Source: Lepidodermella squamata
Lineage: Eukaryota; Animalia; Gastrotricha
Assembly: GCA_047495785.1 (NCBI GenBank)
Contig: JBLDXI010000009.1
Span: forward strand, 2,728,001 to 2,792,000
Direction: 5' to 3'
DNA: 64,000 bases
In this document: positions 3,001-54,756 of the stretch, piece after piece
Layout of the letters: each line of letters begins with the position of its first letter
How positions within the stretch are numbered: position 1 is the first letter of the stretch
Made by a program: the position numbers and the translations under genes
Notes under the pieces: model-generated
Seen by the model: the letters and a program-made list of their open reading frames with translations, nothing else
Told to the model about the DNA's origin: nothing
Database searches by the model: none

Positions 3001-4650
3001 AGTAGCGCTTGTTCCCATTGCTCTCCACCGTGCTCAGGCCAACACCTTGGCCGGCCTGTGTGCAGTGAAGCGTGATTCCTTCGAATTTGTTGAAATTACA
3101 GTTAACGTCGCATACGGGCACATTTCAGACAGGCCCAAGCGCGGAGTGGTAAAGTGCCGTTACCCGACCGCGTACGGGCTGACCCGAACGCGTTCAGGCC
3201 GAATTCGGACTCGGGCCCCAACATTGACACGTAACATTGACACGCTTACGCACGTCCAATGCAGCCCATTTTCACTTGATCACTGAAAGATTAATTGTTG
3301 TTTATTTTGCCTAGGTCCAAATCAATAAAATCGTATTGCTATCTATTCGATTCGATTTTCTATTGTCAATGAACGGTTACCTAAGCACCAAACATGGGAA
3401 CACAATGGGATTTTAGAGATAGAACTAATTTGTTGGCTCTTCCAGGTGAATTACGATGGTTCTTGTATTATTGCTTAAAAATTTGTCCCAGGAATTAGGG
3501 TATTTTTGAGTTTTTGGAATTAAATTTTTCCCCATGAATCAGATACCGCAAGTAAATTCATGCTTTTGGTAGATGAATTAGGGCGATATTTTTTCTGGTG
3601 TAGATTTATCGACTGGCGAAAACCACACCAGGAATTCCTCATGGTTATAAATGTATTGAAAAAAAGTGCGATGCAAAAAAATATTACGCATACTCCAAGT
3701 ACCTAGTTTTCGTTAACACTTGCCTTTGCAGTTATAATGTAGATTTATCTTCTGAAAATCGACGAAAGAGATGAATTGAGTTTGACCAAGAGTATGTAGA
3801 ATGCGCGGATCTTTCGTCTTTATCGTCGGCTTGTCGCTGTCGGCTTGCCACGCCCACCAGCCAGGATGCGAGCTCGACTCGTAGTCGTACGGGGTGTTGT
3901 AACTGTTGTCGTTATTATCGATGTTGAAAAAAGCTGCCTGATCACTTTTGATAAAGAAAATTAATATTCGAAATATTTCTGTTCAGAAATTATCAACTAA
4001 CGGTCCAACATTTTCCTTTATCACTGAGACGTAGCTGTCTCGATCAGTTCTGACATGCTCGTAATTCTGTATTAGGCGATTAATCATTTTTGAAATATCA
4101 GAAAAATTTAAACTTGCCAATCCCAGCGCTCGACCGATCGTTGCAGCTATCAATGGAATCTAAAAGTAAACTAAATAAATTCAATAGCGGCAGGTATTGT
4201 TTTGTATACCCGTCTAGCGCAAGTTATTCCCATGAGCACGTAATTAGGCGGCGAATTCAGGCCGACTTTCGTAAAGCAGCTAAAATTAACAAAAAGTCAA
4301 AGATACATACAATTCTGGCGACATTTTTAATTACTCTCTGCCGAATGAGAATATCAGAACATTGGGCGTTGTGAGGTCGAAGTCCCGTGACCATGCGACA
4401 GGCAGTTGAGTGAAAGTAATACAAGTAGATTGCGACCAAATAGCCATCGCCGCTTCAATATTTGCGACAAATTCACCTTGACAGTCAATCAAAAATCAGT
4501 CAAAATGCAACGGTGAAGTTCTTGCTAACCCAAATGTGTTGAATTGTCGATAATGTATCTCACATTTGCGTTCGGCCATAAACCGGCAGATTTCGGGATA
4601 GCTTCTACCGATATTAGGCAAAGAAGACCCCACACGAGAAAATAGATCAT
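63..4650 (-). CDS. Secreted astacin-like pseudo-metalloprotease (signal peptide, astacin fold, EGF, CUB, kringle, C-terminal Cys-rich repeats); multi-exon, 3' end uncertain
   Basis: ATG 4650 gives MIYFLVWGLLCLISVEA-IPKSAGLWPNANVRYII. Spliced exons give AAMAIWSQSTCITF, CFTKVG, IAATIGRALGL/NYEHVRTDRDSYV, NTPYDYESSSHP and LGQTQFISFVDFQKINLHYNC (astacin pattern). These are followed by EGF CQNNGYMNPSTCNSCNCPPGFAGTYC, CUB (CGG..C.W..CWSYLEIR) and kringle (YEGSMARTARNQACLSW..CRNPEGKLFPYCY..CLIPNC). Splice phases were checked by hand. Confidence 0.85.
2121..2488. mobile_element. MITE/foldback-like element whose terminal inverted arms are built from ~15-nt CAGTGACA(T/A)(T/A)T repeats
   Basis: Left GACTTTTCAGCAGTGACATTTCAGCAAAT.. 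matches the reverse complement of the right end (..ATTTGCTGAAGTGTCAATTCTGAAAAGTC). There are multiple CAGTGACA copies on the left and TGTCACT copies on the right. Confidence 0.7.
2634..3224. mobile_element. GC-rich palindromic MITE, ~590 bp, with ~230-bp inverted arms
   Basis: ATGTTGGGGCCCGAGTCCGAATTCGGCC at 2634 pairs with GGCCGAATTCGGACTCGGGCCCCAACAT ending at 3224. The inner arms (~2740-2840 vs ~3020-3120) are nearly perfectly complementary. No clear TSD. Confidence 0.85.
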
Positions 4651-5090
4651 CGTCCTTCGAAGCTCAGAAATGTCACTTAAACTTCGCTGTATAAAAAAGA
4701 ATGAAAGCATTTACCTATAAGGTTAAAATTGCTGGTAAATGGTTTTAGTAAATTTTTGTTATTATTCTTGACAAATTTCATTCATAGAAAACTCGTGCTA
4801 ACTTCAAAAAAAATAAACGCAACAGAAATTTAGGCTGTATGGCGTCGTAGTTTCCACTATTTTATCACGCGATTTCCGTTCAAGGCACACATTTGTTTGA
4901 ATGATTTTTTCCATTTTTCTTCGCCAGGACACCTGTAGGTTAAGTAATAGTCCCTATCGATTTCGTTTTCAGAATGTTTTGTGGGTGCCAAGTTTCCACC
5001 CTGAATTGAGGGTTCCACTAAATTCGAGACTCCAGAACTAGATTTCCCATAAATACGGTTTCTAAAGTTTCCAGCTTTCACTAGAATCTC

Positions 5091-5280
5091 GAGCCGATAT
5101 CGATTTTACAAATCAGTGATTATTCCGATATCAGCCGTCTTGCAACCCAACATCGATAATTTTCTACGTAGCTTAGGGCACCATTTAGCTAAAATTAAAA
5201 ATCCTAGCATCATGGAGGGCATCAGGATCGATCAAAAACCGGAAACGCCGAAATCGCAAAGAATCTGAAAAAAATTAGGG
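5091..5280 (+). repeat. Dispersed repeat family A, copy 1 (other copies ~18390-18480 +, ~22700-22790 -, ~28090-28165 -, ~36301-36460 +)
   Basis: A shared core ATCGATTTTACAAATCAG(T/C)(G/A)AT..TCCGAT and/or a downstream GGAGGGCATC..GATCAA..AAACGCC.AAAT block recurs at these positions. Confidence 0.7.
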
Positions 5281-5632
5281 TTTGAACCTCATTTTCAGTG
5301 GTGCAAATATTTTGACCCGATCTACTGGTGTCCGGCGTTAATATGCTGAGCCTGATTCCAAACTTGGGAAACCGTACTTGATGCCGAAAGTTTCAGGATT
5401 AATCAAGTCAGCTTTAGGTTCTAGGTTCACATCAATCTCCCATGGAATCAGATTCAGTGCTGGAAACTCTCATGTTTCGATCAAAGAATCAACTGTAGTT
5501 AAATTTTTCAAATGAATTATTTCACTTTAAATGAAACAATCGCCTAGCAATTTTATTAATGTAAAAAGCAATCTTGAAGTTTAAAAAAGCACGGGGTTTT
5601 TAGAAAAACGTCAGAAAATTCATGTCCTTTAC

Positions 5633-7740
5633 TCAAAGCGCCTGCGAAGATGCATTCAGCATTTCTGCATCCACGGCCTGTTTACGGCTGTTATGCGGCT
5701 CGCGTTCGACCAGACGCACCCATACGCCATTTTTCGGCATCATCAACCGCGTGACCTTGACCTTGAGAACGCGATCCGGGCAATCGTCCCCAGCTGGTAA
5801 GACTCGGAACCGGCGAATCAGGTTGATCAAAGTCAGCTTCATCTCGAACAGGGCCAGTCGCATTCCAACGCAATACCTCGGACCATAGCCGAAGCCGAGA
5901 AAGGCCGAGCTTGGGCGAGTAGATGTTGTAGGGTAATCGGGTGAAAATCGATCGGGGTAAAACTCAGCCGGGTCAACAGGCCCCCAGAACTCGGCATTTT
6001 GATGAACGGTCCACATATCAGCGAAAACAAGAGTTTTGCGTTTAGGAACCGGGACACCGCATAAAACTGTGTTTTCAATCGAAAATCGGCTGACGACGAA
6101 AATCGCGATTGGGTACAGCCGGATTGTCTCGTGAACGACCCAATCCAGGTAAGGCATGTGGTTCATCACAGTGTCGTAATCTAGGTCAGCATCAAGGTCT
6201 GGAAATCGAGTAATGGCTTCGTTGTAGACCTTCTCCTGGCAGTCAAGGTTCATCGCCAGGCAATAAGCGGCGTAGGACAAGGTGGCGCTAGTCGTTCCGT
6301 AACCTGCGCCGAAAAATTGAATCGATTGACTGATGATTTCGTTGTCAGTCAGCGGTTTCAAGGGTGGAATCGTGTCGTTATTACTCATATATCGCTGAAC
6401 AGTTTCCGGATTCGATGCGTCAATCAGCATTTGAAGCAAGTCGGGCCTGCGATTTGTCGGACTTTTCCGCCGGTTTTCAATGACATTTTTGCAGACGAGA
6501 GCTAGGGATCGAAATGGAGCCAATACGCCGGAGAAGTACTTCATTTGCAGGACGATGAAGGCCTCGACGATTGGGACGATCTCGGGCAGGCAGCTTGCGA
6601 CTCGAAACATGAGCGGTTCGTTGACCAAAGTTGCGAGGAGGCGTTTGAATTTGGGTAAAATTGGATTGTCCGCCCCTCGATACTTGATCGAATTCAGTTC
6701 GACACCAAAAACCACTTCAGATATTACCTAAAACGGGGAAAAAATTAAAAAAATAACTTAATTTTCAATAAGAAACTAAATTTTGGAATGTACCGTTATT
6801 CGCAAGTTAAAATTCACATTTTCCTCGAAAAATTCTGAAACTTAGGACAAAACTGAGCACGGTAATTTCTGATATTGCAGACAATTTTGGGAATGTTCGC
6901 CTGATTTTTTACAATTCAGGCGTTTGTCTATCATTGGACTCATTAGAGCTCATTAGAGCCTCATTTGCATATTCAACAAACTTATTAATTGCAAGATTCG
7001 CGCTTGAAATACCAGTCGAATTTCGAAGAAAATTACGTCTACTATTTTTAAATATTATTTTAATTTTCGAATATAGGACGTCCGAAACCTTTCTGAACTT
7101 TAGAACCTTTTCTGAAAATCGATTATTTAAATTATTTAAAATTAAATTAGAGAAATTTTATAAAAAAAATTCTTACATCCAGGGTCAAGTACTGAAATGG
7201 CTCGTCGATATTAACCGACTTGTTAGACGCAGCCAACTCAGCCATAAGTTCCATAAATTGTTTCTGGCTCTTCATTATCAGCGGCGCGTAGCTTTTCAGT
7301 TTTCCAGTCGAAAACCCAGGGTTAACAATCGTCCTCAGCCGCTTCCAACGCTCGCCATACACACTGCCGATATTCGAGAACGGCGAATCAGAGTAACGAT
7401 GCGGGTTAGGCTGTACCGGGGCGATTTTGCGGCCAGGAAATGAGTTGAACTGCTTAACACAGAGCCGTTCAATCGCCTCGTCGCTACTCGTCACCAGAAT
7501 TGGCATCGAACCCTCGTAGTAGCCGAAAAACTTGCCGTAGCGCTCGCTCCACGAATGAATCAGCAGATGCCGCTCATCAGTCGCCCAAATTTCGCGTAAA
7601 TTCCCGTAGAACCAATGCGGTTCCGGGCCAGGAATGCCTAGCCGCTTGAAAAATTGATGAGCATAGTAGCGTCGGTACAAGTAGAACGCGGTTACAATCG
7701 TAACCAAAAAGGTTGATAGAAGAGTGAAAAAGACAATCAT
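5633..7740 (-). CDS. Cytochrome P450, clan 3-like (copy 1); exons 7740-7177 and 6727-5633
   Basis: N-terminal TM anchor, GIPGPEPHWFYGNL, WKRLR, ETIR (ExxR), PDRF and heme motif FGYGPRYCVG. GT-AG phase-0 intron at LTLD|VISE. Confidence 0.93.
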
Positions 7741-7935
7741 TTTATCATCGAATTTTTATTTTGCGTTATAGAAAAATTTGTGATAGCTGCCAAATTTTTG
7801 CAATAAAATTCTGAAGATTAACAACGAGGCACGCGTCTTGTGATGCTATACAACATCTGACGCACGCGTTACGACATTTACAAATTATAAAGACATAACA
7901 CACAAAAGCTGGGTCATGTGATTTGATTTTTTTTA

Positions 7936-10016
7936 TCACATTCGAGGCACCAGCTTGACCAGCACCGGGCCGACAGGTGTGAGGAGACCTTCGCGGGATG
8001 ACACCCGCAAACCACCTGGTGGGTACCCGCCATCGGGCTCATCGATGCGGTAACGGCGCAACAAGTTAATCAGCGTCATTTTCATTACCAACAAAGCCAT
8101 TCGCGCACCTTAATAAAAATTCAAAAATTTGACCTAATTTGCAAAACCCATGGAAAAAATGATCAAAAGTGCGAATTGTGCGAGCGAGCCTATATTCAAT
8201 CGATGGAGAATTTTCTGAATTATATATCGGTATAAAAACCGACAGGTTATTCGCAAATAGCCCTTTGACATTTGATCATCGCGCGCGGTCCGAAATCTCT
8301 AAAAATGTTGATCACACGTGCACAAAATTCGCACTTTCGCTCACTTTTCTGAAAAAAATCAACTTTTTTATGAATTCAAGTTACCGATGCAAACTCGAGG
8401 GCCGTATCCGAAGCCTAGGAACGCTGAATCAGGGCGATGAGTCGAATTTTCCGGTAGGAATCGCTCCGGGTAGAACAAAGCCGGGTCTACCGGGCCCCAT
8501 AGATGCGGGTCGTTATGAATTGACCAAACATCGGCCTGAACGCAACCCAGCGCCTTCGGAACTTGAACACCACACACCTGCGTGTCGTTTATCACAAATC
8601 GATTGATGAAATTCAGCCCGATGGGGTAGCGGCGTATCGTTTCGCGGCATACAGCGTCTAGATACGGCAGCTTAACAATGGCGTTGTAATCGACCGGGTC
8701 TAGCGAAACGTTCGATTCGGCGATTTCTCGATACAATTTTTCCTGAATCGATTGATTTCTCGCAAGTTCGTAGCTAGCAAAGGCTAGGGTTGTGCTTGTT
8801 GTTTCGTAGCCGGCGAAGAAAAACAGAAACGATTGAGCTTTGATTTCATTTTCACTCAAAGATTTGCTGAGCAAGTTTAGATTTGTCGGCATTGAAATGC
8901 TGCTATTCATTAGCTCTTTCATTGAGGCATTAGGCGAATCGTTGGGTGAGCTGCTTCGAGAGCTCGATTCACTGCCAGATTCGGCCCCATTAGCGGCAAT
9001 CATCAGTTGTAGTAGGTCGATTTGGCGAATATTCGGATTTTCTTTACGATTTTTTATCAATTTTTCAACAAGGTTCAAAAACATGCCGATGGGACCGAAA
9101 ACTCCGAAGAGCAGTTTCATTTGGTGGTCAATAAGGGGCTGGAAATTTAAAAATAAAAAATCAGGAATAGATTAGTTTTTGAAATTTTTAACCTTCAAAA
9201 ATGGGACACATTCAGGTAGGGCAGATAGGAAATCGATTACAGGTTGGCGTTGAGTGGCGTAGTCTAGAAATTGTTTCAGTTTTTCGCCAAGAATATTTCC
9301 CTTGCATTTTGTTCGAATCGCGTTGAATTCGATGCCGAAGCCAACTTGAGAAATAGTTTCCAACGTGAGAAATTGGTAACTTGATCGAATATCAAAAGAA
9401 GGAGATTTTCTGTACAAAAAATTTGCCAATCGGGAAAGCTTTAAGGTTATCAAAAATTACTTGGCCTCTTCGTCCAACGTCTCAATTAGGTCAGTTTGTA
9501 TTTTAGCGACGGTTGGAGCGTAAGATTTCAGCTTTCCAGACGAAAAAGCCGGGTTGACGATAGTTCGAAGACGTTTCCATGTGTCACCCTGGGCAAACAG
9601 CATGTGGCTGAGAGGGTGGTCCGGCTCTTTCGTCGGATTCGGTTGAATAGGATTGATCTAAATAAAATTCTCCTTAATAGCTGGGATTTTCAAAAATTCG
9701 AAAATTCTACCCGATGGCCCTGAAAGTTTGAGAATTGTTTAATACAAATTTGTTCGACAGCTTCAATGCTGCTTGTGACCAGGATAGGGTTCGGACCTTC
9801 GTAGTAGCCGTAAAAGTGGCCGTATTTTTTCGACCAATTAGCAACAACTTCATGGCGATTCTCGGCCCGGAGTTCGCGTAAATTACCGTAAAACCAGTGT
9901 GGCGCCGGGCCGGGAATGCCATGGCGTTTAAAAAACGTGTGACAGTAGAGTTTGCGATACACGTAAAAAATGAATAACAACAAAATTGGTAGAAAAATCA
10001 GTGTGGTTAAAATCAT
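7936..10016 (-). CDS. Cytochrome P450, clan 3-like (copy 2); five exons
   Basis: GIPGPAPHWFYGNL, AGYETT I-helix, ETIR, PERF and FGYGPRVCIG|ARMALL. The last exon ends LVKLVPRM-TGA at 7936. Confidence 0.92.
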
Positions 10017-10368
10017 TTCTGTTAGCAAATTCTGTATTCGAAATGACTTCAAAGTTATAAAACAAAAAATCTTGTTCAGTAAAATCGTGTTTTTGGGCAG
10101 AAATTTTTTTGTTGATGATCGCTTTTGATAAAGTCGCACGTGCTCGGACGGCGCCATCTGTTTTTCATTCGTGTGCATAAAAAATTATGGTGATGCGATC
10201 TCTATTTTTGAGGTTAATTGCTTCAGGTGTAAATCATAGACGAGATCAGTGTAAGCTCAATTAAAAGCGCACCTGCTGGCAATTCCACGTCGAGACTCGA
10301 AAATAATTGGCATAAAAAAAAGAAAAATTAGATGATTTCTGTTTTTATTATATATTATATATAGCTAT

Positions 10369-33281: not shown

Positions 33282-35205
33282 ATGAAACGACCTGCTAAGC
33301 GAGCTGCATCTGACGCTGGTGATGAGTTGCTGCTAGTCGATGACAACAAAGTCGACGGTGGTAAGCCGAAACAGGCGAAAATGGGCGGTAACAAGTCTAG
33401 CAACCGGACGGGCGGCACCTCAAATGCCGCCGGGTCATCAACACCTTCCCTACCACTCCATGCAAAACTGGCCCATATTCGAGCATCACTCGAGGGCAAA
33501 GAACTGTGGCAAGAATTCGATGAACTCGGAACGGAGATGATTGTAACGAAAGCTGGGCGAAGAATGTTTCCAACTTTTCAAGTTCGACTGTCGGGCATGG
33601 ATCCTACTGCGACGTACACGATTCACCTGGATTTTGTCCCGGTCGAGGATAAACGATTCCGCTATTCGTTTCAAACTTCGAGCTGGGTTGTAGCCGGAAA
33701 GTCGGACCCACACGGACCTCCGCGAATTCATGTAAACTCTCAGAAACTAGATTTGAAACTTTTTCAATCATGTTTATTTTTGCAGTACCATCCTGACTCC
33801 CCTGCGCGTGGGATTCATTGGATGAAACAGGTTGTATCTTTCGACAAGTTGAAGCTTACTAACAACCCAATGGATGAGAATGGATATGTAAGCTCGATGA
33901 CACTGTAATTCGTTTTATTCTATTTTTTTTAATTTTTTTTCAGATTATTTTGAACTCGATGCACAAGTACCAGCCCCGTTTGCACATTTTCTACCATCCC
34001 GATCAAAGCGCCGCCGCGGATGCAAGCAATCCAAGCGCTTCATTGGAGGAAATTACCCGTCGCTATTCGATTATTAGGACGTTCGTGTTTGCCGAGACAA
34101 AATTCATGGCCGTAACAGCCTATCAAAATCAACGCGTAAGTTCTAGATACGTGAATTTCCGCTGGGGACATAACTTAAAATCGGAATTTATTCTAGATTA
34201 CTCAACTCAAAATCGCTAGTAATCCTTTCGCGAAAGGATTTCGAGATTGCGACGCCGAGGATTGGTGAGAAATTAATTTTCTTAATTGATTATGACTAAT
34301 TAGTAAATTGTTTCTAGCATGGCTGAGGTGTTCAGCCATATGAACTCGCTTATCAATAATCCCCTCGCTGCAGCGGCCGTGGCGTCTGTAACTGGCTCGG
34401 CGCCTTCAACCTCCGTATCGCCAAATGATCCTTCAATTAGCAAACGCGCGAAAGGTATGCGTAATTTAGTAGTAAAAAAAATCATCCCTGATGAAAAAAA
34501 ATTCTTTCAGGCGGGAAAGATGGGTCGAAAAATCGTGGTAGCCCAACAATGGTCGGCCATCATCAGCACTACGACCAGGGGAATAATAACCATTACAGCC
34601 AACACCAGCCGACTGATTATTCCTGCAATAATATGGCGCAAAATCACCAGGCGTTTGGAAATCTAGGCAATTCTAGCGATCCGTCAGCGGCTGCTGCGGC
34701 TCTGCTGGTCAACCAGGCCGCGGCGCTGAGCCGAGCCGCTGTTGCCGCCGCTGCTCTTTCGAGCTTCACACAGGGTGCCTACAACGTTCAGCCGTCTCAG
34801 TCCACCCTGCATCAATCGGGCGGCTATGACCCATCAGCCATGCTCGCCTCGGCCTGGCAGCAACAACAGCAGCAACAACAACAGGCCTACAGCGCTTTAG
34901 TCACCCAAGCTCTGGTGGCGAAAAGTAACAACACCGCGAAATTAGCTCATTCGCCTAATAATTCGGGTGGCTATTACGGTTCGAAGTTTTCCGGGAATGA
35001 TCAACCCTTGGCGCTGACCAGTGGCGCCAGTACCGGGTCTATTTCCGACCTAGCGGCTCCGATGCCGTCGTCGTGCCTCTCGTCGCCGTCCGGCGCCTCG
35101 ACAGCCTCTTCTTCATCGAACCACCACCAAAGTTCATCTTATAGCGACACTAATTTACCAGGCACTCTTATGTCATCGGCCAATGCCGCTGAAAACGATA
35201 ATTAA
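33282..35205 (+). CDS. TBX1: T-box transcription factor, Tbx1/10 (org-1/mls-1) subfamily; six exons
   Basis: [109 protein letters not shown]; Ala/Gln/Ser-rich tail. Confidence 0.93.
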
Positions 35206-42229: not shown

Positions 42230-43366
42230 TTAGAGAGCCATCAGCGATTCAGGAACCCGGCAACCGTAGAGAAGTCGCCAACTGGGTGGAATTTTCCATT
42301 GCATCTGCTCTGGGACGAATAATTTGCCGCCATGTAGCCCATCTTGGTCTTCCTCATCGACATCAAGCAATGAAGGGGTGGGCGAAGAGGCGGTCGATAG
42401 ACTCATTCGAGATCCAGGGGCTTCTAAGCCGATCAATTCCAGGCAAGAAGCGAGGTGATTCGCCAAATCCATCGCATCTGGCGCGTTATCGCCCTCAGAG
42501 CAGAAGCGGAGTAGGATGAGACACGAGAGTTGAGCCTCAATCGAGCGGCGGTACAACTCGCCGGCAAAACCACCGCCAGGAATTGAAATTTTCTCCGACT
42601 CATGTTCATATTTCATCGACTCGCCGAAATTTTCCAGAAATCGTTGGCCAACAGCGGTTTTCATCGAATTTTCATTGCCGAGCCAACGAACTTGCGATTT
42701 CGTACGTAAATCCGCGTCAGATCTCGAGAATGCAAAGGCGGACGTGAGGCAAATGACTGATTCGATGCCGAATTGTTTAGAAAATTCGATCAATTCAGCG
42801 ACAAATTTCTTCGACTGGCCCTTGATAACAGCAGATCGCAGTTGAATAACAACCCATTGGAAGTCATGATTGACGTAGACATCCGCCGCGGTACAGATCG
42901 CGCTCACCCCGGCGCCGAATGGGTTTGCGCCGACGACCGGGACCAGCGCGCTTGAACACAGCCATCCAGCCAGTTCGAACTTGTGACTTTTCGTGTGCTC
43001 GCTTGAAGTTTCAGTCGCAATTTTACCAGTAACAGCGCGACGTTGTGGTAAATAAATGCGATCGTGCGATTCGCCGCTTGTTTTCAAGGCGCCTGGGGCT
43101 GAAGAAATCGGTGGGCGAGCGGCGTCGGGCGAAGGCGCTGGGAAATTGTTATCGACTTTCTGAATTTTTGCGCCATTTTTAAGTGCAAGGCCAACTGGGT
43201 CGGTTACTTTGCAGGTGGCTAATAGCAAATCGACGGCAAGCTGGCCGACATTTCCGTAAGAGACTGATGGTATTACCATAGTATAGCCGGTCAGATTTAA
43301 AGGCCGGTCGGCATCGCTGGCCTGACGAGGGTGAAAAATAGACGATGCTGCCGTTTCGATGACCAT
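42230..43366 (-). CDS. PSMG2: Proteasome assembly chaperone 2 (PAC2)
   Basis: LTGYTMVIPSVSYGNVGQLAVDLLL, LVPVVGANPF, VIQLRS, IPGGGFA, LLRFCSEGDNAPDA, WKIPPSWRLLYG. The first ATG (~43366) is used as the start. Confidence 0.92.
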   Translation of the reverse strand: MVIETAASSIFHPRQASDADRPLNLTGYTMVIPSVSYGNVGQLAVDLLLATCKVTDPVGLALKNGAKIQKVDNNFPAPSPDAARPPISSAPGALKTSGESHDRIYLPQRRAVTGKIATETSSEHTKSHKFELAGWLCSSALVPVVGANPFGAGVSAICTAADVYVNHDFQWVVIQLRSAVIKGQSKKFVAELIEFSKQFGIESVICLTSAFAFSRSDADLRTKSQVRWLGNENSMKTAVGQRFLENFGESMKYEHESEKISIPGGGFAGELYRRSIEAQLSCLILLRFCSEGDNAPDAMDLANHLASCLELIGLEAPGSRMSLSTASSPTPSLLDVDEEDQDGLHGGKLFVPEQMQWKIPPSWRLLYGCRVPESLMAL

Positions 43367-45169
43367 TGTTTGTTTCGTAATATTATCAGTTATCACTACA
43401 AACACATCAACAACATGATAATAAAGAAGATGCGAGTGCGCGAGGCCTCAACGTTAATAACTAGGTTACAGGAAGTATAGTGCGCAATTGCTTGGGTGGT
43501 AGCCGTGTGGGCGGTTGAGGCCGTTTCCCACGGCCTCGGCGTGTTCCAAATAGGCAAGTACAATCAAATTTACTGTTGTTTTGCACGAAACCAGTGTTCG
43601 ATTTCTTAACATCGAATTTTAGATCGAACTAAAACGTGCATCTGACATAAAAACATTTCTAAAATTAGCTACGCGCTCAATTATTACAGGACTCAAATAG
43701 GTCATCGGCTTACAATGAAATAGACCAAAATAAGTATTACAAAGCGGTCAATCAACAACAAGCATGCAATCTTTGGAAATAATTCAAGCTAAGCTGGTCG
43801 TATTTGAAGCCGCTTTTCTGGCAATCACTAAACTCAGATGATCGCTGTCAACAAAATTGAAATGGCTGCATCGAAAACTTGGTAAAAAACGGCGCAGAAG
43901 AAAACAGGCTGAGAGGGTCAAATGATCTAATATGTGATATGTAGTATTACATTTTTATACCGAATTCCGAATTACCAGTTGTCTGGAGTTATCCAATCTA
44001 CATTTAAATGTGAAACAAATCGCTACGCAGAGGAAATGCAAGACTGGCGAGGAACACATTTTTAGTAGACTTTTAAGCCAGTTGCTTACTTCAAGAATGA
44101 ATTCATGCAACAAAGAAAATGTGCATCGAAACAATGGCGCGCTTTTATTTTTAGTTTCGCGAAAAGAAAATGATGAACATCGTGATGCGAACAGATGAAT
44201 GGTCATAACCCGACGCACTGCAACAGCAAAAATCACTCAGCATTCTGCCATGTTAAGTTGCAGCTGGTTCTAGCCTAAAATACGCAGCATGTGCCTTGCT
44301 TGCTCACAGCTTTTTCTATAGAAATCAAAGTCACTCCTCAATCCGTCGGATATCGGAAATACTTTTATACATGCATATGAATAGATACCTAGCTGACAAC
44401 TCAATTATTAAAATTTAATAATAACTCCATATCGTAGTTCGTGGTTTTGCAAGGTTAATTCATGTTCGGAAGTGGTAGGAACAGATAGCGCGTTAAGTTG
44501 ACGATTTCACGGCCAAGATTCTCCCGATTGGATATCAAGATTAGACAGTTTCCCCTTTCATTTCGTGAATTTAGATGCCTTCCTGATAGCTGACAAGTAA
44601 AGATGGTCGGTATGAATTAGACATCGGTAAAAATAGTTAGGCACATCAACAAACAAGCTCATTGTACAATATTATGAAACCTACCAGATCAGTTATTGAC
44701 TTTAATCAGCATCGCTTGATACGCTGGCCTATATAAGTAAGTATATCGCACACAGACTGTATTGTAATATAACCCAACTGATAACCCAGTCATAGCCATA
44801 AACCTAACATATAACAAGCGTGAATAAACTGAATAAACCAAGGGCGAATGAAAAAATCAAAAGAACCTGGATCCCGCAGATGCTCTTTGGATGAAGAAAG
44901 CTAGTATATATTTCGCTTTATCAATGAAGTCGGCATAATCCTAGGGTTAAAGCTTTAACACCAGACCCAAGGTGGATTCTGCAACACGAGAAATATCCTA
45001 AAAAGTCCTGAGACCAAAAGTAACTACTTAACCACTTTAGGCTTTTAGATCAGAATCCATCATCTTAAAACCAGAATCAACCGTTGAAGGTGAAAGGACC
45101 AGCGACCAACGCAGTCGCCGCGAAGAGCAGGGGAGAGAGGGATCCCGTCCCGACCTGGGCAAACAAAAA

Positions 45170-45200: not shown

Positions 45201-45610
45201 AGTCAACCTAATTAATATTATTATATTTTATCTATAAAAATATTAAATCGTATAATCAATAAAGTAGTGATCAGACCTTCACATAGTGTATCACGTGGGT
45301 TATGTGGGTTATGCGTTTTAGAGAGCTGTTTTTGACCTCCTTCGCTGTTTTTTACACACCCTCTTTGTTTTGGACATCTCGGGTCTCTAGGCCTAGTTGG
45401 AGGCTTCAATTGCTGTCATATGGTGGATTATGCTTTTGATACTTATTTGTTTGTGAGATAGATTACTTCTTTAGTTCTAGCTTACTTAGCAACCCTTCAG
45501 CATCTGACCAGTCAATATGATATCTAATTCACGATCATTTAAGTATTGTAAAATAATTTTGGGTCTATTTATTATCCACTAATAGAAAACTTAGTTGTTC
45601 TATATTCAAA

Positions 45611-46190
45611 ATGGGCGCTGTTTCCAAGTCTTGTGAAAAGGGCATGGGCTACCTTGCTGGAGTCGCAGTCGGCACCGTTTTCGTCAACCAATACCTTGCT
45701 TACAAAGTTATGCAAGCTCGCAAGCAGTACGATGTTAAATATCCCGCCCTGTACCACCCGGAACCGGATCACATTTTCAACTGTGTTCAACGCTCCCATC
45801 AAAACTAGTGAGTTTTGTATTCATGTTTCGTATTTTCAATTTGTGACGTTATCACCATCTTCACTCCAGCATTGAAAACCAGCCCGTTTTCCTTACATTG
45901 TTGGCTGTTGCTGGTATGAAGTTCCCGGTAAGTTTTGTACTAAAAGTGAGTCTAGAGCGTTAACCGCTTTTTCTTAGAAACAAGCCGCTGTTTGCGGTGT
46001 CATCTACTTAGCTGGCCGTATCGTCTATGCTTGGGGCTACTCCAGCGGTGATCCCAAGAAGCGCATGTATGGCGCTTTTGGCTATTTTGGCCTGCTGCCT
46101 CTGTTGGGCATGTCTGTCTACACGGTCTTGTGCAAGACTGGTGTCATCCAACATACTGCAGGAGCTTGCTGCCACGCTGCCTCGAAATAG
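45611..46190 (+). CDS. MGST3: Microsomal glutathione S-transferase 3 (MAPEG); exons 45611-45808, 45870-45927, 45978-46190
   Basis: V..ARK.Y.VKYP.LY, FNCVQRSHQNY|IENQP.FL, GRIVYAWGYSSGDPKKR.YG. Confidence 0.93.
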
Positions 46191-46450
46191 TGTGGAGCTC
46201 TCATGATGAAAAAGGATGACAAAAGTTGAACATATTCAAGCTACTCAAGTAGCAACATTATGATATAAACACGCAGTGTCAAAAGTTTCCACCGGTGATT
46301 CGTAATTCTGTCATCTCTTCGATTCTTTTCCCTTTAGATACCCTGATAGCTAACGAACTAGACATGAAATAAAAAAACAAAGATCTACGATTTATAATTT
46401 TGTCCTGTTTATTTTAGCTTGAATGTATTAATTATCATCTTCACTGACGA

Positions 46451-49400
46451 ATGGCAGCCCGGTCGAAGATCAGAGACTCCGTTGTCTCATCGCTGAAAGA
46501 TCTGGGTTCAGAGTTTGACCTTTTATCAGACACTTACGGTGACTCTGACCCTCTTGTCAGAGAAAAGATCAGTAATCTCAAGAAAAAATTGGAAATAATT
46601 TCTAGTCGCGTTGAAGCTTCAAAAGTTGCTAACAAAGACTTGCCTGATTTGTTGGAATTATTCGAAATTTTCACGTTGAATCCAGACGGTACATTTCAGT
46701 CCAGCCATGCTGAAGATATTCTAGAACTTCTGAAATGCGGTAATGGTCGAGTCATTCAAATTTTTCGTTTTAATTGCTCTCTTATACTGTAGTTTGCAGT
46801 AAAGTTGCCAGTGCTTTTGAGTTGGTTTGCTTCGATGAGTGGAACCTCGTGGCTGAAAATCGTCATGCGCAATCAAATGGCTCGGCAGATATCAACTCCG
46901 GCGAGGTGTCCCGTGCAGAGTCTCATAAGGAAAACGAACTGGCATCGGTTGTCTCAAATGGCGGCGATGAACATGCTGCGACTTCTAGCGAAACTCAAGG
47001 TGCTTCTAAAGCTTCCAAATTTATGAAAGTTGCCACAGCACAGCCGAAGAAGCCGGTCATCATGTTCAACCCTACAGCTGCTAAAGTTAGCAAGTCGAAG
47101 GAGGATTCTGTCAAGCCTGAGGAAATATTCTCACCTCCTCCGGTTGCTCCTCCTAAAACTGCTCCTGCCTCGAGTTCGAATATGAATTTCTTCGGCTCCC
47201 CTCCTCATCAGCCAGTTTTCGTACCTTCTGAACAATCAGCTCAACGTGCCTCGACGATGGCGAACGAAATTTTGACGAAAGCCCTGGAGGCGGCTTCGTT
47301 GAACCAAGCCCCGGCATTTAAACTTCCTCAAGCTCCGCAACTACCCAATCCGATTATGCCTCAGATTTTGCCGAATGGAATGTTTCTACCCGCCTCTGCC
47401 GCTCAACTGCTGAATCAAGCCCTTCAGCCGCCGAGACTTCAGCCGCAAGTTGCCCAGCCGCAACTTTTCACCTTGGGAAATGGCCAGCAATTTCAGTCGA
47501 TGCAGCACATTCCACCATTGTTCAACCTCGGCTCCATCGCCCAGCCGCCAACAGGTGCGTACAATCCCTATTTTGGCTTCGTCGATCGTCGCAAATGACG
47601 ATGAACAAAATTTTCTATAACGAACCAGTATTGAAGAGTATCTCAGAGAGTTGACTGACGAAATCATGTTTCCTATAATTTTGCAATTTGTATTGCTCAT
47701 TGTTCAAATTATAATGTTCTCACTAATAAACAATGCATCCTATTCGTTGTGGTGACTTTTTGCATTAGATGAAGCTCTTTATGTATTATCGCGTTTTTGA
47801 GAAAGTGTCTTATTTAAGGAGGAATTTTTACTTTCGAATACCTTTTAAAAATGAGTTTTTCTCTTGTTTTCCTTACAGTTCCAATTTACGATGAAATCGC
47901 CGTGGAACCAACTGATTTCGTAGATCCCGAGCCTGCTCCAACGTCGAAGGCTGGTAAAAAGAAAATCGTCATAACGGACCCAACGACCGGCGAAGTGGTA
48001 GATATTACTTCACCAAACAACAGCGAGCCTTCTACAAGGAACTATCGCACTGCCAGCGAAAGCTCTGGAAGCAGCTTTATTCCTGAAAAGAAGCCGGCAT
48101 TATCAAGCTACATGGTTGAAGTTGATTCAGTAAGTATACCAGTTCAAGAAATCGAGAAAACCGTGTCAGAACCAGCGAAAAAACCGGCGCCGCCCCCGGG
48201 ATTTAACAGCGCGCCTAAATCAACGAACCAAACTGAATTTTCCGCGAAGAATGTTGAGGATTTTATTCCGACGAAAACGTTTTCGAAACCGCCAGGATTT
48301 TTCGACAGACCAGAGCCGCCGAAGGAGACGGAAACGGATAAAATCGTTAGCTTTTCGCGCGATTTTCTACGCAACAAAACGCTATCTAGCGGCAAATTGA
48401 CGAAGACTGAAAAAGTTTTTGCAGAATATCAAACGAAGCATTCATCAAATGTAGACGTTGAAGAATTTATGGAAGCACTAAAGAGCCACAGCGCGATTTT
48501 CCGTTTTTCAGCATCTGGCTCGAAAATCGAATTGGTCGAAGTTATCGAGCGGAAAATTGTCCAGTTTATTGTTAATGAGCTGGTTAAATTGCCAAATGAA
48601 TCCGGCGGTGCTGTTACCATGATTTACGACGCATACATCTCGATAATGCGAGACAAAACTCGAGTTCTTCACGTAGGATCGAAATTTTCGTTGGATGACG
48701 TCACTGAATTGGTCGAACAGCGATTTTCTGATATAATTCGCTTCTCCGATGATCAAACGACGTTATTCTTGTCGGAAATAATGCTGGAATCTGTCTTTCT
48801 TATTGTTAAATCTCAACTGGAGAAGGAACGGGACGCCAAACCGCCGGCTGAATTGCATGATTTGTTCCAGAAAATTGCTGATGAGCGACTGGCGTATCTC
48901 GTTTCATTCGATACTTTCATCGAAATGTTGACTCGTCGCACGAATTTGTTTTTATTCGCAAATTCGCGAGTTTCGCTGGCTTCGATGAATCTGAATGTGT
49001 CCAACCCGGTGCCTAGGGCGAAATCGACCAAGCTAACCAGTCGTCAGCAGTCGGGCGGTGGTCTTGGTCAGTTGGATGATTACGGCGAGCCGGAAGAACA
49101 GCCGGAAAATAAACGCCTCATGTCGCCCATTGGCGATTTGGATGTTCGTTTTGTGGAAATGCTGTCAGAGGAAGGAAATTTTGACATTTGCTCGAATTTT
49201 GTCGATGAATTCAACGCACTTCAAGTCGGTGATGTCATCCCTGTTCGAGACTTGCCCGAACCGCTCGATACGTCGGAACATATCGGCAAATTTATTGGCA
49301 TGGTTTCATTCGTTTCCATGGAATCTCGCCGGTAAATTTCCAAAATAATTTTACGATTTTATTTTCGTGGTCATCTGTAAGCTAGGAAATTGTCTCAAAT

Positions 49401-52400
49401 TCTAAAGTTGAAAATACCTTAAATCAATTGAAGAAACGTATGAGTTGAAATTTTTTATCGCTCACTGTGAGCTAAGCGAGTCGAAAAATTTGCCCTATAG
49501 GGCGAAACTTGTTAATTTTTCATTTTTTATCAATTTTTTGGAGGCTCCCAAAGCTTGTGCTGATGAGCGTCCAAATTTACCACGAATTTTCAAACCAAGT
49601 GCACAAATATTTGCCATGACAAATATCGGGTGAAATTCTGTGAAATTTTCTGAAATCGCTGCTGATTTTTTAATTCTCGAAAAACCTGGTATTCATTCCA
49701 AGTCTAAGTAATTAGCGTATGTATTTTCTGGATTAAAAGGACCCCTTTTTTCCAGATGAGGGAGGAATCGTATTTGCTTAGTGGTTTTGCCTCATAATTG
49801 GGCCTTATTTGCTCAGTATTTTTTCATATAAAAGAGCGCTATCGCTGTAGTATACCGCAAGGGTAGGGTTACTTCGCATTCTAAACCTCAAATTTTGACT
49901 TTGACACTGTTCATTACATACCAAAACCAGCCGTGCAAACCTGTGTTTTTATTTTATATTTTTTATTCATTTCTAAGCTTTTAACTAAATTCTTAGGAAT
50001 AGAATAAATTCTAAATGTTTTATTTACGAATTGTTTTATGCCGAATTCATTGAAAAATCGTAAACTTTTCAGGGTATTCATTTACTTCCCTCGCGACCCG
50101 GTGTGCGCCGGGTTTTCGACCGCTAATGACCTGGTAAAAGACGACGATTTCCTCTCGTGGGCCAACGCTATGATCCACACCTCGGCGCGATCTTGCCCGC
50201 CTGGCTGGTGCGACGTCGGCCGTTTCGTGCTGTTCTACGACGAGGACAGCGATTCGTTTGGCCGCGGTTGCGTCCTCAGCACATTCGCCCTGCCGCACTG
50301 CAACGTCAGCATCGACGTGCCTGTTGTTGAATCGATCACCATCCTCGATATCGATACGGGCATTGTTCATCCTAACATTCGTGCAACGGTAAATTATTCA
50401 AAATTTCATATCATACAGTCGGAAAGTTGAGTCCCAAATATTGGTACCTAGGTAACAAGAATTTGAATGGAATATTTAGGAGATTTCCTCAAAACCAATG
50501 AAATATTCTTTCGTTATCGGAGTTTGATTGTCGGGTAGAAGATAAAAAAGGAAGAAAATGCGCTATTTTCATCGGAATTTTCCCACGACTGTAACTCCTC
50601 CATTTTCCATGGTTCCACGTTTTCCCCTCTACTTTGAACATGTGTAGCAAGGATACAAAGTAGACGATTTGGGCATATCGGCATCAGAGTCTGAAAGCCC
50701 AAGTCCGCCATATTACTTTGAATCAGTTCAATTTCTTCGACTTTTTTTACTGACAATTTCGTCGCGTCATTTTTGAGCTTTGATTGGCCATTCACATTTT
50801 AATCGCCCAACTTTTATCATCTTCCGCAAAAATTAGCAATTAGTGTTACCTACGGCACCCTGACAGACGGCGCCCATAACCAACGGGATTATTAAATCTA
50901 ACTTTAATTCCATGTAAATATGATCAAATTATCTGTAGAAAACCGGACACAGCAGGCTTGATTAAATTAGGGCCTCACTTTTAGCGGAAACAAAATTTCC
51001 TGGAGCGGAACCACAGTTTAAATGACCCATTCGCGCACAAATTCTGAATTCTGTGAAATTTCAAGATTAATTAAAAACAAATCCTAACGAGTTGAAATCC
51101 TGCGGGATTTTCTGTATGAGACCTGGTCGTTTCCTCCAGAACGCGACACGGTCATGGTCTACAAAATAGGTCTTCGAAAATGGCACCTTTCGGAATTAGC
51201 CTTTCGGTCTGCATAAGGCAAATTTCCTTCCGCCTAAGGTTCGCGTTCTGTTCGATTTAGCTAGTAAAATGATAAAAAAAACGGCGACTTCTAGCGCATC
51301 ATGTCATCAAATAACCGAAAATAAATGCCTAGACCCGAAATCCTATCGCCAAATATGTACCATTTCCCGCGAAAGAGAGTGACTTCTAGGCACACGTGCA
51401 TACGCGCTGAGACATGGGCCCGAGACACTTACGTTATCCCAGCCAAAAATTGGAAGTTAATGTCATTAATATGTGATCAACTTTTATCTCTAATGTAAAT
51501 TGGACAACGAAGTTAGCACCGTCATAATCAACAGACAAAACTGATGTCTGTATTATACCCTGATTTTCAGTAATTTCGATTTTCTATTTTTCTGCCGAGA
51601 AAAAATAAGATTAAAGCAGCGTTTCCCAAACCGTGTCCTATAGGACACTCGTGTACTAAGCCAACTTTCAAGTGTACTATAGGACACTGGTGTCCTATGG
51701 GCCTCAAAATGACAAAAGGAAAAAAGTAGATCCACACTAAGAAATAAGGCATTTTTAGACTATTTTCAGACTCAAAATCGGAAAAAAACCGTCAGCTAAA
51801 GCTCGCTTCGCTCGCGAGTAGCCTATTTATGAAATGTTGTATTAAAATCTCCGATCGGACAAGAGACGGTGCTTTCCGCGTGGTATGGCCGAATCTCTGA
51901 TACGGTAAATGATTGAGTCAATTTTTGAAACTGACCTATGTCCCTTGTTATTTAAGCACGTTACAGATTGCACCTTACGACATGATTAATTGACATTTCA
52001 TAATTAATGATGAATTTCTGGGAAAGCCCCGAGGCATTGCCTCATTTTTAAGATTTTGTCGTTTTCAGTGTCAAATTCTAAAAGTGTCCTCGCTTCGCTC
52101 GCGTTTAGTTTGAATTTCACCCGGAATTTTATCAATTTTCAGCGCGGTTGTCATCAAAAACAAATTTGAACTAGCAATCAATTTGTAACTCAAAAAATTG
52201 CACTCCCAACCAAATTCCCAACCAAAGTCCCAAGTCGCAACCAACTTTCAGTCATTTCACCAAGGTGTCCTACGAGCCATTCTCATAGGACACTGCTGTG
52301 TCATATGAGACAAATAGTTTGGGAACCGCTGGATTAAAGCGTTCAATTTTGGGTTTTTGTTTTGGAACTTTTGCAAGAATAATTGAAATTAATGACCTAC

Positions 52401-54175
52401 TGACAACTAAAACTTATTGGAATTATTGGAAATGGTAGTTTTTCGCGGGAGGTGAATTAAAATCTAGTTCACAATTAATTCGATAGCAGTTCATGGATCC
52501 CTAAATACGTCTGAGGTGACATAAAGCCGCTAATTCTTGATTTGCTCGAAATTGCCGAAAAGTGGAGCCCTTGTTGTATTGGAAAAATTGTTGATCTAAT
52601 TTTCTGTGCTGCGCTCTTGATACTATCATTATGTTACATCCAACACTCCGATCTGGCTATAATCGCTTTGAATAGAGGCAATGTCATAACAAAGATTGCG
52701 GAGTTTTTTTATTGTCTAGCCGCCGCGCTTGCAGTCTGGACCAATTCATTAAAATCCAGACTGCAGACGCTGGGGAGGCAATGTCTTATGACTGATTAAT
52801 CGAAGTTTCACCTCAGAAAGGCTGCAGCGTTTGGCATTTTTCATCATCAGAAAGACTAAACAAACTAACTTTAGTACCTAGTTACAAGGAACCTGCCACG
52901 CCTGTCAAACAAATTAGATCAGCGGCCCAGTTTATTAAAGTGAGAAATCGAATAATTCCAATTTGAACGAATATTGACGTTGATGTCACCATGATGTTCA
53001 GGCGTTACATGACGTTAGCGTCGTTAATTAACTCGAATTTGGGCCTGTTTACGTCAGTTTTAAGGTGATAGGTGACAGGTAGTGGCATTTTTTTTACGCG
53101 AAATATGAGACAAAAACAACTTTGAATTTAAATTGCCACCTAGCAATTCAGAACTGAAATAAACAAGACTAAATCCGACGATAACGATAACAAAAATATT
53201 TAAAAAATTCGACTAGTAAGGCAAACAAAGAAAATTCACGGAAATGGCTTCGGAAACTCTATAATGATAGGCCAAGTCCTTTCTTATGGCCATAATAATC
53301 TTGAAAAATTCATAAAGCCATGAGAATAGTGATCAAGTATGTCACATGTCAATGGGATGAACAAATATCCGGATAAATTTGGTCCAACCAGGTAAAAAAA
53401 CGAAGATTACCGAACCAGTTACATCAGGTGTTTCCGGGTTTTCTCCGGTAAATTTCTAAGTTTTTCGGTAATAAATCGCGGATAAAGGATGGAAGATTAT
53501 TCCTGTACGTTCAACGTCGCAAAATTAGCCAAATTTCCTGAGAAAATTGAAAATCCAAGATATGGCTGCGCAACTTTTGTTTCATTCTTTTTCAAATTAC
53601 TATTGGGTATTGGGCATACTCATTTGAGCTGCTAGAATTGAAGTTCCACCACTAAATATACGCGCATTTTTCCGATTTTTTCGATCTCGGCTGTTTCTGT
53701 TTTTAATCGATACTGATACCCCCTCCCCTCCCCATTGCTCTGGAATTTCTTATCTAGCTACTAGGTAAAATATTGAGACTCTTTGGGAAATAATTATAGC
53801 TCAAAAAAATGTAGAAAATTTTTATCGCTCCAACCCTAAAAACTTAATATTCTAAGAAAACAATTAATGCAATATTTTCTCTTCTAAAGCTTCTGTTTTG
53901 AATTTTTCTTTCATTCTTCTTGATAGCATGTTTCAGCGTTGACCAAATACCGCGATATTCCATGTCTCGTCATTCGTTGTTCTTTCATCCTGGAGCCCGG
54001 TGCCCTGCCGCCGAAACAGAAGCGCCAGGTCATGTTCACGCTGGACACGCGCAATCTCTACCCGCCGGAAGGACCGAAGGACAAACCCGTTAAAATTGCG
54101 GCCATGCGAGCCGCCCGCGTCAGCGAGTATCGAAGCGCCGAGACGCCGCTGCCAGCCATTATTTTGGCACCTTGA
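46451..54175 (+). CDS. Protein with long low-complexity N-terminus, three winged-helix (LOTUS/OST-HTH-like) repeats and a C-terminal extended Tudor domain (TDRD5/7-like architecture); exons 46451-46739, 46793-47554, 47879-49331, 50073-50388, 53927-54175
   Basis: Phase-consistent GT-AG junctions. Tudor pattern: GMVSFVSMESRRVFIYF..VGRFVLFYDEDSDSFGRGCVL..ILDIDTG..HVSALTKYRDIPCLVIRCSF. Three repeats end F.E.L....IF.F......L. Confidence 0.7.
51617..52331. mobile_element. Non-autonomous hAT element (715 bp) with 15-bp TIRs and a perfect 8-bp TSD
   Basis: TIRs CAGCGTTTCCCAAAC / GTTTGGGAACCGCTG; TSD GATTAAAG at 51609-51616 and 52332-52339; subterminal GTGTCCTA/TAGGACAC repeats. Confidence 0.9.
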
Positions 54176-54756
54176 AAGCAGCGAAAAATTATCGACCTGA
54201 AATGTAATCTGACACTTGATATTCGTACAAATCGTTGTTCACCCAATTTTGTATAATCGTTTTCATGATGCTGGTTGTATTAGGCGCGGAGTGTGTATTA
54301 TCTGAATCTCAGGACAAAGTTGTTTTCTTTCCGCTCATCTGCGTTCTTGCTCCGTGTCGCGTTTATCTGTGCTAAAAATTGAATAAAGTCGGTCATGTCC
54401 GATCGCCGGAGAATAAAATGACAAATTGGGATGTCTTCGCCTTCGTTAACTTTGAAAATTAACCGGGTAAATGTAGATTGGAAATCTGATTATATTAGCG
54501 AGCGCTCAAAACAAATCGTGGGCAAAAGCTGCCACGTATGTGGACTTGTTCCAGAAAACTGACAAATTAGACAGAAATAAACGCGTCAAGGCACCTTGCC
54601 ATGGTCTGATGACACTGAAATGTTATGCTTCATAAATTGCTTTCGACACTGGTGGACAGCCGCAGACGTCATTGATCAAATTGGCCAACTACTGCAGACC
54701 TTCAAATTATTCTAAGCTGATTTTTTGTTCAAAATTCGGCGTTTTAATCTGTCATA

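Follow-up and report, generated by a model that had tools for sequence, protein, structure and literature searches.

Positions 46451 to 54175 of the window, by which we mean the whole 64,000-nucleotide stretch of the gastrotrich Lepidodermella squamata analysed here (contig JBLDXI010000009.1, positions 2,728,001 to 2,792,000 of the forward strand), hold a five-exon gene on the plus strand whose product combines winged-helix-like repeats with an extended-Tudor-like domain. An earlier note on this DNA had described, at 47879-54175, a LOTUS/Tudor-type protein fused to translation-control motifs. Those limits coincide with the first base of exon 3, preceded by the acceptor ccttacag, and with the last base of the stop codon.

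Gene structure, transcript and orthologue

Five open stretches on the plus strand join via GT-AG at every intron, giving a coding sequence of 3069 nucleotides (1022 codons). Exon 1 (46451-46739) opens with the ATG at 46451 and ends at a GT donor. It encodes residues 1-96, contributes the opening base of codon 97 and makes up most of a conserved N-terminal helical domain (residues 1-118). Exon 2 (46793-47554, residues 97-350) supplies the end of that domain, CSKVASAFELVCFDEW, and a Q/P-rich disordered region. Exon 3 (47879-49331, residues 351-834) carries the remaining disordered region and the motifs in it, then the three winged-helix-like repeats, followed by a linker and the N-terminal portion of the extended-Tudor-like domain. 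Exon 4 (50073-50388, residues 835-940) adds a strand and a helix together with the core of the Tudor-like barrel, and exon 5 (53927-54175, residues 941-1022) encodes the C-terminal portion of the domain and the stop codon.

To follow the transcript, contigs of three public runs (X1, X2 and X3) were compared over 48180-54179 for junctions and depth. The runs carry no tissue record and are all kept as contigs. Contigs of X2 and X3 sit on exons, those of X2 spanning 48229-49206, and neither run has contig depth over the unique parts of introns in this interval. Record 16 of X3 joins 49330 to 50072, which becomes 49331|50073, the junction of exons 3 and 4, when the G common to both sides is assigned according to GT-AG. 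Record 15 of X2 and record 17 of X3 join 50387 to 53926 which, with the shared G likewise placed, is 50388|53927, the junction of exons 4 and 5. Further upstream, over 46440-48230, X2 contains 0.71 of the sampled words, and exonic bases make up 0.78 of that interval. This share agrees with one RNA-type assembly that also contains exons 1 and 2 together with the first part of exon 3, the 1-2 and 2-3 junctions not being among those observed. The gene is thus transcribed and spliced as modelled, with direct junction evidence for exons 3-4-5, as the earlier note had supposed in placing the exons in one transcript. Synonymous differences from the window outnumber non-synonymous ones among the coding variants (15:3 in X2, 10:2 in X1), showing that the reading frame is under purifying selection.

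An exhaustive phmmer/HMMER search of 1.84 billion representatives returned a single cluster, P0001 (E 2e-10, 30% identity), with three near-identical members. P0001 sits on a 13-kb metagenome scaffold, L001, which shares with the window an upstream MAPEG/MGST3-like gene, counterparts of exons 1 and 2, and a separate last exon. The exon 1 products are 32% identical, the exon 2 counterpart starts with SSRVSCAFEMACFEDW at the same place, and the intron before the last exon interrupts the coding sequence at the same codon and in the same phase as intron 4 of the window, after which L001 reads LDRFRDVDCLSIRCSF...PLPVIILADH. On L001 a single uninterrupted open reading frame (ORF) spans the repeat region and the Tudor-like core, and the two therefore belong to one protein, independently of the splice contigs. 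The joined exons 3-4-5 and this single ORF both bear out the claim that the winged-helix units stand N-terminal to the Tudor-like part in one polypeptide. Elsewhere relatives were not found: a word-index protein search with exon 3, which covers proteins of 266-847 residues, gave no match, and among 600 pattern matches from a scan of JGI metagenome contigs with the two-species alignment there were zero relatives.

The full models of the two species are ~25-40% identical, depending on the region. Coding parts of the MAPEG/MGST3-like neighbour are ~62% identical between the same two organisms vs. ~30% for the scaffold protein, which marks the latter as fast-evolving. The neighbour lies directly upstream in both (window 45557-46216, plus strand; L001 625-1981, as two tandem copies), so synteny is conserved. 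The N-terminal domain (46451-46850) is 32% identical to that of the orthologue and ends in a strongly conserved AFE[LM].CF[DE][ED]W; for exon 1 Pfam gives a sub-threshold 'WHD, winged helix variant' (E 0.038).

Around the coding sequence, an AATAAA at 54382-54387, ~207 nucleotides past the stop codon, is a candidate polyadenylation signal. Intron 4 contains non-coding high-copy repeats, placed by X1 contig depth at roughly 51580-52380 and 53180-53580 with no strand assigned, where summed depth reaches 900-6800 vs. ~60 in adjacent intron sequence, and where rearranged joints and loose ends are numerous. These are probably small transposable elements, and weak X2 (RNA-type) depth over them indicates that copies are transcribed somewhere. 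The other genes of the window are ordinary animal ones: two tandem CYP3-like cytochrome P450 genes, a T-box transcription factor exon and a PAC2/proteasome-assembly-chaperone-like ORF, with coordinates listed jointly as 5633-10178 (minus strand), 33282-33908 (plus) and 42230-43405 (minus). Rfam found no match in the window.

Conserved islands in the disordered region

The 385 residues that separate the N-terminal domain from the repeats include, in exon 2, a low-complexity Q/P-rich stretch (residues ~230-350), present as the earlier note had described it ahead of the motifs. When a 12-residue window was slid over the two-species alignment, this region showed exactly three islands of conservation. 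Island 1 (residues 179-193) contains KKPVIMFNPT (47047-47076, plus strand; residues 182-191), which we call copy A of a basic-strand motif; KKPIVLFNPT is aligned with it in the orthologue, and the earlier note had not listed it. Island 2 (residues 373-390) reads GKKKIVITDPTTG vs. GKKKITIIDPKTG in the orthologue and overlaps copy B, KKKIVITDPTTGEVVDI (47956-48006, plus strand; residues 377-393), whose counterpart is GKKKITIIDPKTGQEPDF; the positions G-K-K-K-I-x-I-x-D-P-x-T-G are identical in both species. Island 3 (residues 446-461) reads PA..KPAPPPGF vs. PA..KAPPPGF and holds APPPGF (48187-48204, plus strand; residues 454-459), with KAPPPGF aligned in the orthologue. A second PPGF, KPPGFF (48286-48303, plus strand; residues 487-492), falls in an alignment gap, the orthologue having one PPGF only.

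The three motifs flagged earlier are thus in frame where they had been placed, with the small correction that APPPGF starts at 48187, the 48190 given before being its first P. As to their conservation, KKKIVITDPTTGEVVDI and APPPGF are islands and KPPGFF is not kept. Copies A and B share the pattern KK-x-(aliphatic)3-x-[DN]-P-[TK], found twice per species at aligned places. When the disordered region was shuffled with its composition preserved, PPPGF arose in 0.2% for the window and 0.06% for the orthologue, and the basic-strand-DP pattern in 0 of 20,000; at such frequencies the three islands are not due to chance. If the protein has functional short linear motifs, these islands are the best candidates for them. 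The two-species comparison contained no conserved eIF4E-binding motif and no conserved FDF, GW, RG-repeat, LC8 or nuclear localisation signal pattern. PAM2 was considered as a shared feature and rejected: FNADAVPYRP occurs in the orthologue only, with no match at the aligned place in the window (IYDEIAVEPTDF). In the orthologue itself this sequence (L001 3745-3790, residues 334-343) is a fair match to the MLLE-binding PAM2 motif and stands 20 residues before the GKKKI motif.

Copy B had been likened to the PABP-binding segment of eIF4G. In human eIF4G1, the element whose replacement abolishes PABP binding is KRERKTIRIRD (bioRxiv 10.64898/2026.04.06.716749). Set against it, KAGKKKIVITD has five identities in 11 positions plus one conservative change, and the arginines that flank the second Ile are replaced by V/T or T/I. 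As in the eIF4G PAM1 peptide (PDB 4F02), a basic run in a disordered region leads into I-x-I-x-D-P with a Gly three residues on. The flanking arginines of PAM1 are lost here, however, one extra residue stands ahead of the following D-I-T, and the remainder of the protein, unlike eIF4G, has neither an MIF4G domain nor an eIF4E-binding motif. A phmmer search of the PDB with the motif peptide found no match at E up to 10, and a profile of the motif from both species (hmmsearch, PDB, E up to 10) did not retrieve the eIF4G peptide of 4F02. What the profile did match, at E ~1, was a set of hairpins: cyclophilin (GKTSKKIVITD), acetyl-CoA synthetase (KVFIPDPKTG and VVLDPNTGE) and GerQ (HIIISDPKTG). 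AlphaFold2 likewise models copy B as a strand-turn-strand β-hairpin, at a low predicted local distance difference test score (pLDDT ~50). Since the profile retrieves unrelated hairpins and the identities are few, copy B resembles eIF4G as a generic basic β-hairpin with a DPxTG turn would, and the description of an eIF4G-like PABP-binding segment is not supported. PABP is a possible partner of the protein, though the sequence gives no pointer to it; RRM2 of PABP as the binder of the basic-strand motifs would be an improbable candidate.

PPPGF matches the GYF ligand motif exactly, is kept in the orthologue and seldom arises by shuffling. In ligands of GIGYF-type GYF domains, PPG precedes a hydrophobic residue, Trp excepted (PMC6648886), and PPPGF (residues 455-459) fits this consensus, in a stretch that AlphaFold2 models at pLDDT <50. 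The known ligands TTP, ZNF598, GW182 and Drosophila HPat resemble the present case in carrying a GYF motif in a disordered, proline-containing stretch, here an exact PPPGF kept in the orthologue. The protein differs from them in having one conserved copy, the second PPGF being species-specific. The likeliest partner of PPPGF would be a GIGYF/Smy2-type GYF domain, which we rate as possible rather than probable.

Winged-helix-like repeats and the Tudor-like C-terminus

The three units of ~70 residues in exon 3 align in one register with the three units of the orthologue and share one pattern with them. All lie on the plus strand: repeat 1 at 48340-48543 (residues 505-572), repeat 2 at 48544-48777 (residues 573-650) and repeat 3 at 48778-48987 (residues 651-720). 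The AlphaFold2 model of exon 3, built from a three-row alignment, has a mean pLDDT of 40, with the exception of exon-3 residues 150-220, which correspond to repeat 1 and reach 70-85. Repeat 1 has the topology H-(E)-H-H-E-E. In a structure search against representatives (VIA), its best match is the WHB domain of a cullin (3dpl_C; Z 8.8, root-mean-square deviation (RMSD) 5.0, 77 residues aligned), and the APC2 WHB domain scores Z 8.4 (RMSD 2.0, 65 aligned). Repeat 2 follows the pattern of repeat 1 and is modelled at pLDDT <50; repeat 3 has the same pattern and no confident fold model. A winged-helix-like fold is therefore supported by the model for repeat 1 and plausible for repeats 2 and 3, and the earlier count of three winged-helix repeats stands for the first of them, the other two being without a confident fold.

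Family searches with this region returned little. A profile of all six repeats found no LOTUS chain in the PDB, an Atlas feature search with exon 3 and with the repeat region gave no usable family, and Foldseek and Atlas shape searches on the exon-3 model were uninformative, most of that model being of low confidence. From Pfam came sub-threshold noise only: EF-hand, mTERF, TrwB and the WHD match of exon 1. LOTUS domains are difficult to identify from sequence, and the mLOTUS domain of C. elegans LOTR-1 was modelled on the winged helix of Cdt1 (PMC9200344). This makes the negative LOTUS searches weak evidence against a LOTUS identity.

The extended-Tudor-like domain takes up residues ~781-1022. 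As this region spans three exons in the window, it was modelled on the uninterrupted segment of the orthologue, P0001:335-505. The AlphaFold2 model, from a shallow alignment, has a mean pLDDT of 46, rising to 57-63 over a helix and the four strands of the barrel. Its top structural match is TDRD1 (Z 4.8, RMSD 3.1, 69 aligned), followed by Papi (4.7) and Tudor-SN (4.5), and nearly all of the top matches are Tudor or extended-Tudor domains (TDRD1, TDRD3, Papi, Tudor-SN, Krimper, Qin, and eTud9-11 of Tudor). Foldseek gave Tudor-SN with a probability of 0.66-0.72 (E 0.7-1.3). In the Atlas feature search every nearest language-model neighbour is a PF00567 cluster (score 0.86; 174-177 features shared), and one OST-HTH+TUDOR cluster is among them, at rank 14. 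These lines are individually weak but in agreement, and it is quite likely that the C-terminus is Tudor-like; fold matches and PF00567 neighbours alike make a Tudor-type C-terminus with a degenerate cage, as first described, the best reading.

In place of the F-x-D-Y-G-N cage strand the protein has ILDIDTG (50341-50361, plus strand; residues 925-931). The strand reads I-L-D-I-D-T-G in the window and V-I-D-I-D-S-G in the orthologue, so that in both species the Asp is kept and neither the Asn nor an aromatic residue at the two aromatic positions is present. Extended Tudor domains that read methyl-arginine use a cage of four aromatics and an Asn (...F-x-D-Y-G-N), which this domain lacks, and methyl-arginine reading by it is, from its sequence, unlikely. 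After a variable stretch the C-terminal PLPAIILAP (54148-54172) is kept, as PLPVIILADH in the orthologue; it may form the final strand of the domain's SN-like portion or be a terminal motif.

Readings of the scaffold and its motifs

From N- to C-terminus the protein consists of a helical domain (residues 1-118), a disordered Q/P-rich region of ~385 residues, three winged-helix units (residues 505-720) and the extended-Tudor-like domain (residues ~781-1022). An order of winged-helix or LOTUS-like units followed by a single cage-poor Tudor domain would, by analogy, be the layout of TDRD5, Tejas and C. elegans LOTR-1. On balance, we think that the locus probably encodes a lineage-restricted, rapidly evolving 1022-residue scaffold of the TDRD5/Tejas/LOTR-1 type with docking islands. 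The three islands, two of the form KK-x-(aliphatic)3-x-[DN]-P-[TK] and one PPPGF, would be docking sites for partner proteins, and the folded domains would hold the protein in a ribonucleoprotein assembly, the winged-helix units perhaps binding a helicase or RNA and the Tudor-like domain binding without methyl-arginine.

LOTR-1 (D1081.7), a TDRD5/7-like protein of the Z-granule whose partner is ZNFX-1, also has winged-helix (LOTUS) units upstream of a single Tudor domain (PMC9200344). In both proteins the Arg/Asp pair of the Tudor domain is kept and two cage positions are aliphatic: L613 and V616 surround the retained D615 in LOTR-1 (L613-x-D615-V616), where the window has I-L-D-I and the orthologue V-I-D-I (PMC9200344). 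The LOTUS and Tudor domains of LOTR-1 are likewise elusive in plain sequence searches (PMC9200344). LOTR-1 differs in showing no detectable sequence similarity to the present protein, for which the exhaustive HMMER search returned the metagenome orthologue alone. It also has an eLOTUS and an mLOTUS domain rather than three repeat units, with the eLOTUS beginning at residue 33, whereas ~500 residues precede the repeats here. TDRD5 carries several LOTUS domains ahead of a single Tudor domain, and in order and number the domains of the present protein resemble those of TDRD5. The likeness extends to Drosophila Tejas and Tdrd5l, proteins of nuage and germline bodies, with the difference that Pfam OST-HTH and TUDOR are undetected in this protein. 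We know of no N-terminal motif-bearing region described for TDRD5, Tejas or Tdrd5l. Drosophila Tdrd5l is reported to repress the translation of maternal mRNA (bioRxiv 10.1101/2022.08.02.502436), and such scaffolds can therefore act in translational control.

Several observations weigh against this assignment. The winged-helix matches of repeat 1 are generic, with the LOTUS domain of MARF1 at Z 6.9 and rank 48. Pfam, read up to E 10, detected neither OST-HTH (PF12872) nor TUDOR (PF00567) in the five exons, in any repeat of either species or in the Tudor parts; exon 3 and the orthologue, when compared with PDB sequences, matched no LOTUS, no Tudor and no eIF4G. Together with the profile and Atlas searches, these results leave the LOTUS identity claimed earlier without confirmation. 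All Tudor structural matches have Z <5, and both AlphaFold2 models are poor (mean pLDDT 40 and 46). A single orthologous lineage is available, so that 'conserved' here means two species. With regard to partners, Drosophila ZNF598 (PPPGF) and GW182 (PPPGL) do not bind Drosophila GIGYF (PMC6648886); a GYF motif match is thus necessary but not sufficient, and predicts no binding by itself. A germline role, finally, is suggested by analogy only.

Some of these points would suit a different protein, a lineage-specific Tudor-like one whose repeats are generic winged helices unrelated to LOTUS, without a link to Vasa or germ granules and possibly acting as a somatic ribonucleoprotein or chromatin adaptor. 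The best fold matches of repeat 1, which are the cullin/APC2 WHB domain, Z-alpha, RPA2 and histone H1, speak for it, as does the want of any OST-HTH signal in Pfam, the PDB profile search or the Atlas features. Tandem units directly upstream of one extended-Tudor-like domain are, however, the TDRD5/Tejas/LOTR-1 layout, and an OST-HTH+TUDOR cluster is found among the Atlas neighbours of the Tudor part. LOTUS domains are known to evade sequence searches (PMC9200344), and an identity of ~30%, against ~62% for the neighbouring gene, would fit the fast evolution usual for germ-granule proteins. We regard this alternative as unlikely. Somewhat less likely still is that the basic-strand motifs dock no partner, being instead β-strands that pair with one another or with domains of the same protein in self-association or condensation, or elements of the SUMO-interaction or nuclear-import type. 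Two copies of one pattern, the strand-turn-strand model of copy B and the ordinary structural hairpins that are its nearest sequence matches in the PDB would all agree with pairing, although the modelled hairpin reaches a pLDDT of only ~50. The aliphatic runs IVI/ITII and VIM/IVL fit loose SUMO-interaction motif patterns. Such motifs usually carry acidic flanks, whereas the flanks here are basic, and nuclear import finds no conserved K-[KR]-x-[KR] pattern to support it.

The earlier note had gone much further than a scaffold. Spelled out in full, its model would have KKKIVITDPTTG grip RRM2 of PABP as the PAM1 of eIF4G does and PPPGF recruit GIGYF-4EHP, poly(A)-bound mRNAs being taken from the closed loop into cap-dependent repression in germ granules. 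The orthologue keeps both motifs, PPPGF agrees with the GYF consensus, and the occurrence of the basic motif twice would suit a multivalent binder. In eIF4G, KRERKTIRIRD is followed by P-x-x-G. In the window, a P-x-x-G likewise follows KAGKKKIVITD. But only 5 of 11 residues agree, and the arginines beside the second Ile, part of the mutated element, are not kept. The profile finds cyclophilin, acetyl-CoA synthetase and GerQ hairpins rather than the 4F02 peptide, and the comparison yielded no conserved PAM2 and no conserved 4E-binding motif. We consider the model very unlikely; its grip on PABP and hand-over to GIGYF-4EHP would draw on one generic resemblance and one consensus match. The fuller version with both basic motifs, in which a germ-granule LOTUS-Tudor scaffold uses two eIF4G-like PABP-docking hairpins and a GIGYF-docking PPPGF to couple poly(A)/PABP-bound mRNAs to 4EHP-dependent repression in granules, seems to us highly improbable. 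If true, it would be a previously undescribed link between TDRD5-type scaffolds and translational control at cap and tail.

The scaffold of the TDRD5/Tejas/LOTR-1 type with docking islands is put forward as a well-defined hypothesis, its mechanism being a proposal. If the architecture is right, a poorly sampled animal lineage has a highly diverged counterpart of TDRD5, Tejas and LOTR-1, with an added N-terminal region in which just three short motifs have withstood a sequence divergence of roughly 70%. Islands of this kind are as a rule binding sites, and as such they would be precise, mutable handles on what the scaffold recruits. A GYF-domain partner, if true, would tie a LOTUS-Tudor scaffold to the 4EHP/decay machinery, in line with the translational repression reported for Drosophila Tdrd5l.

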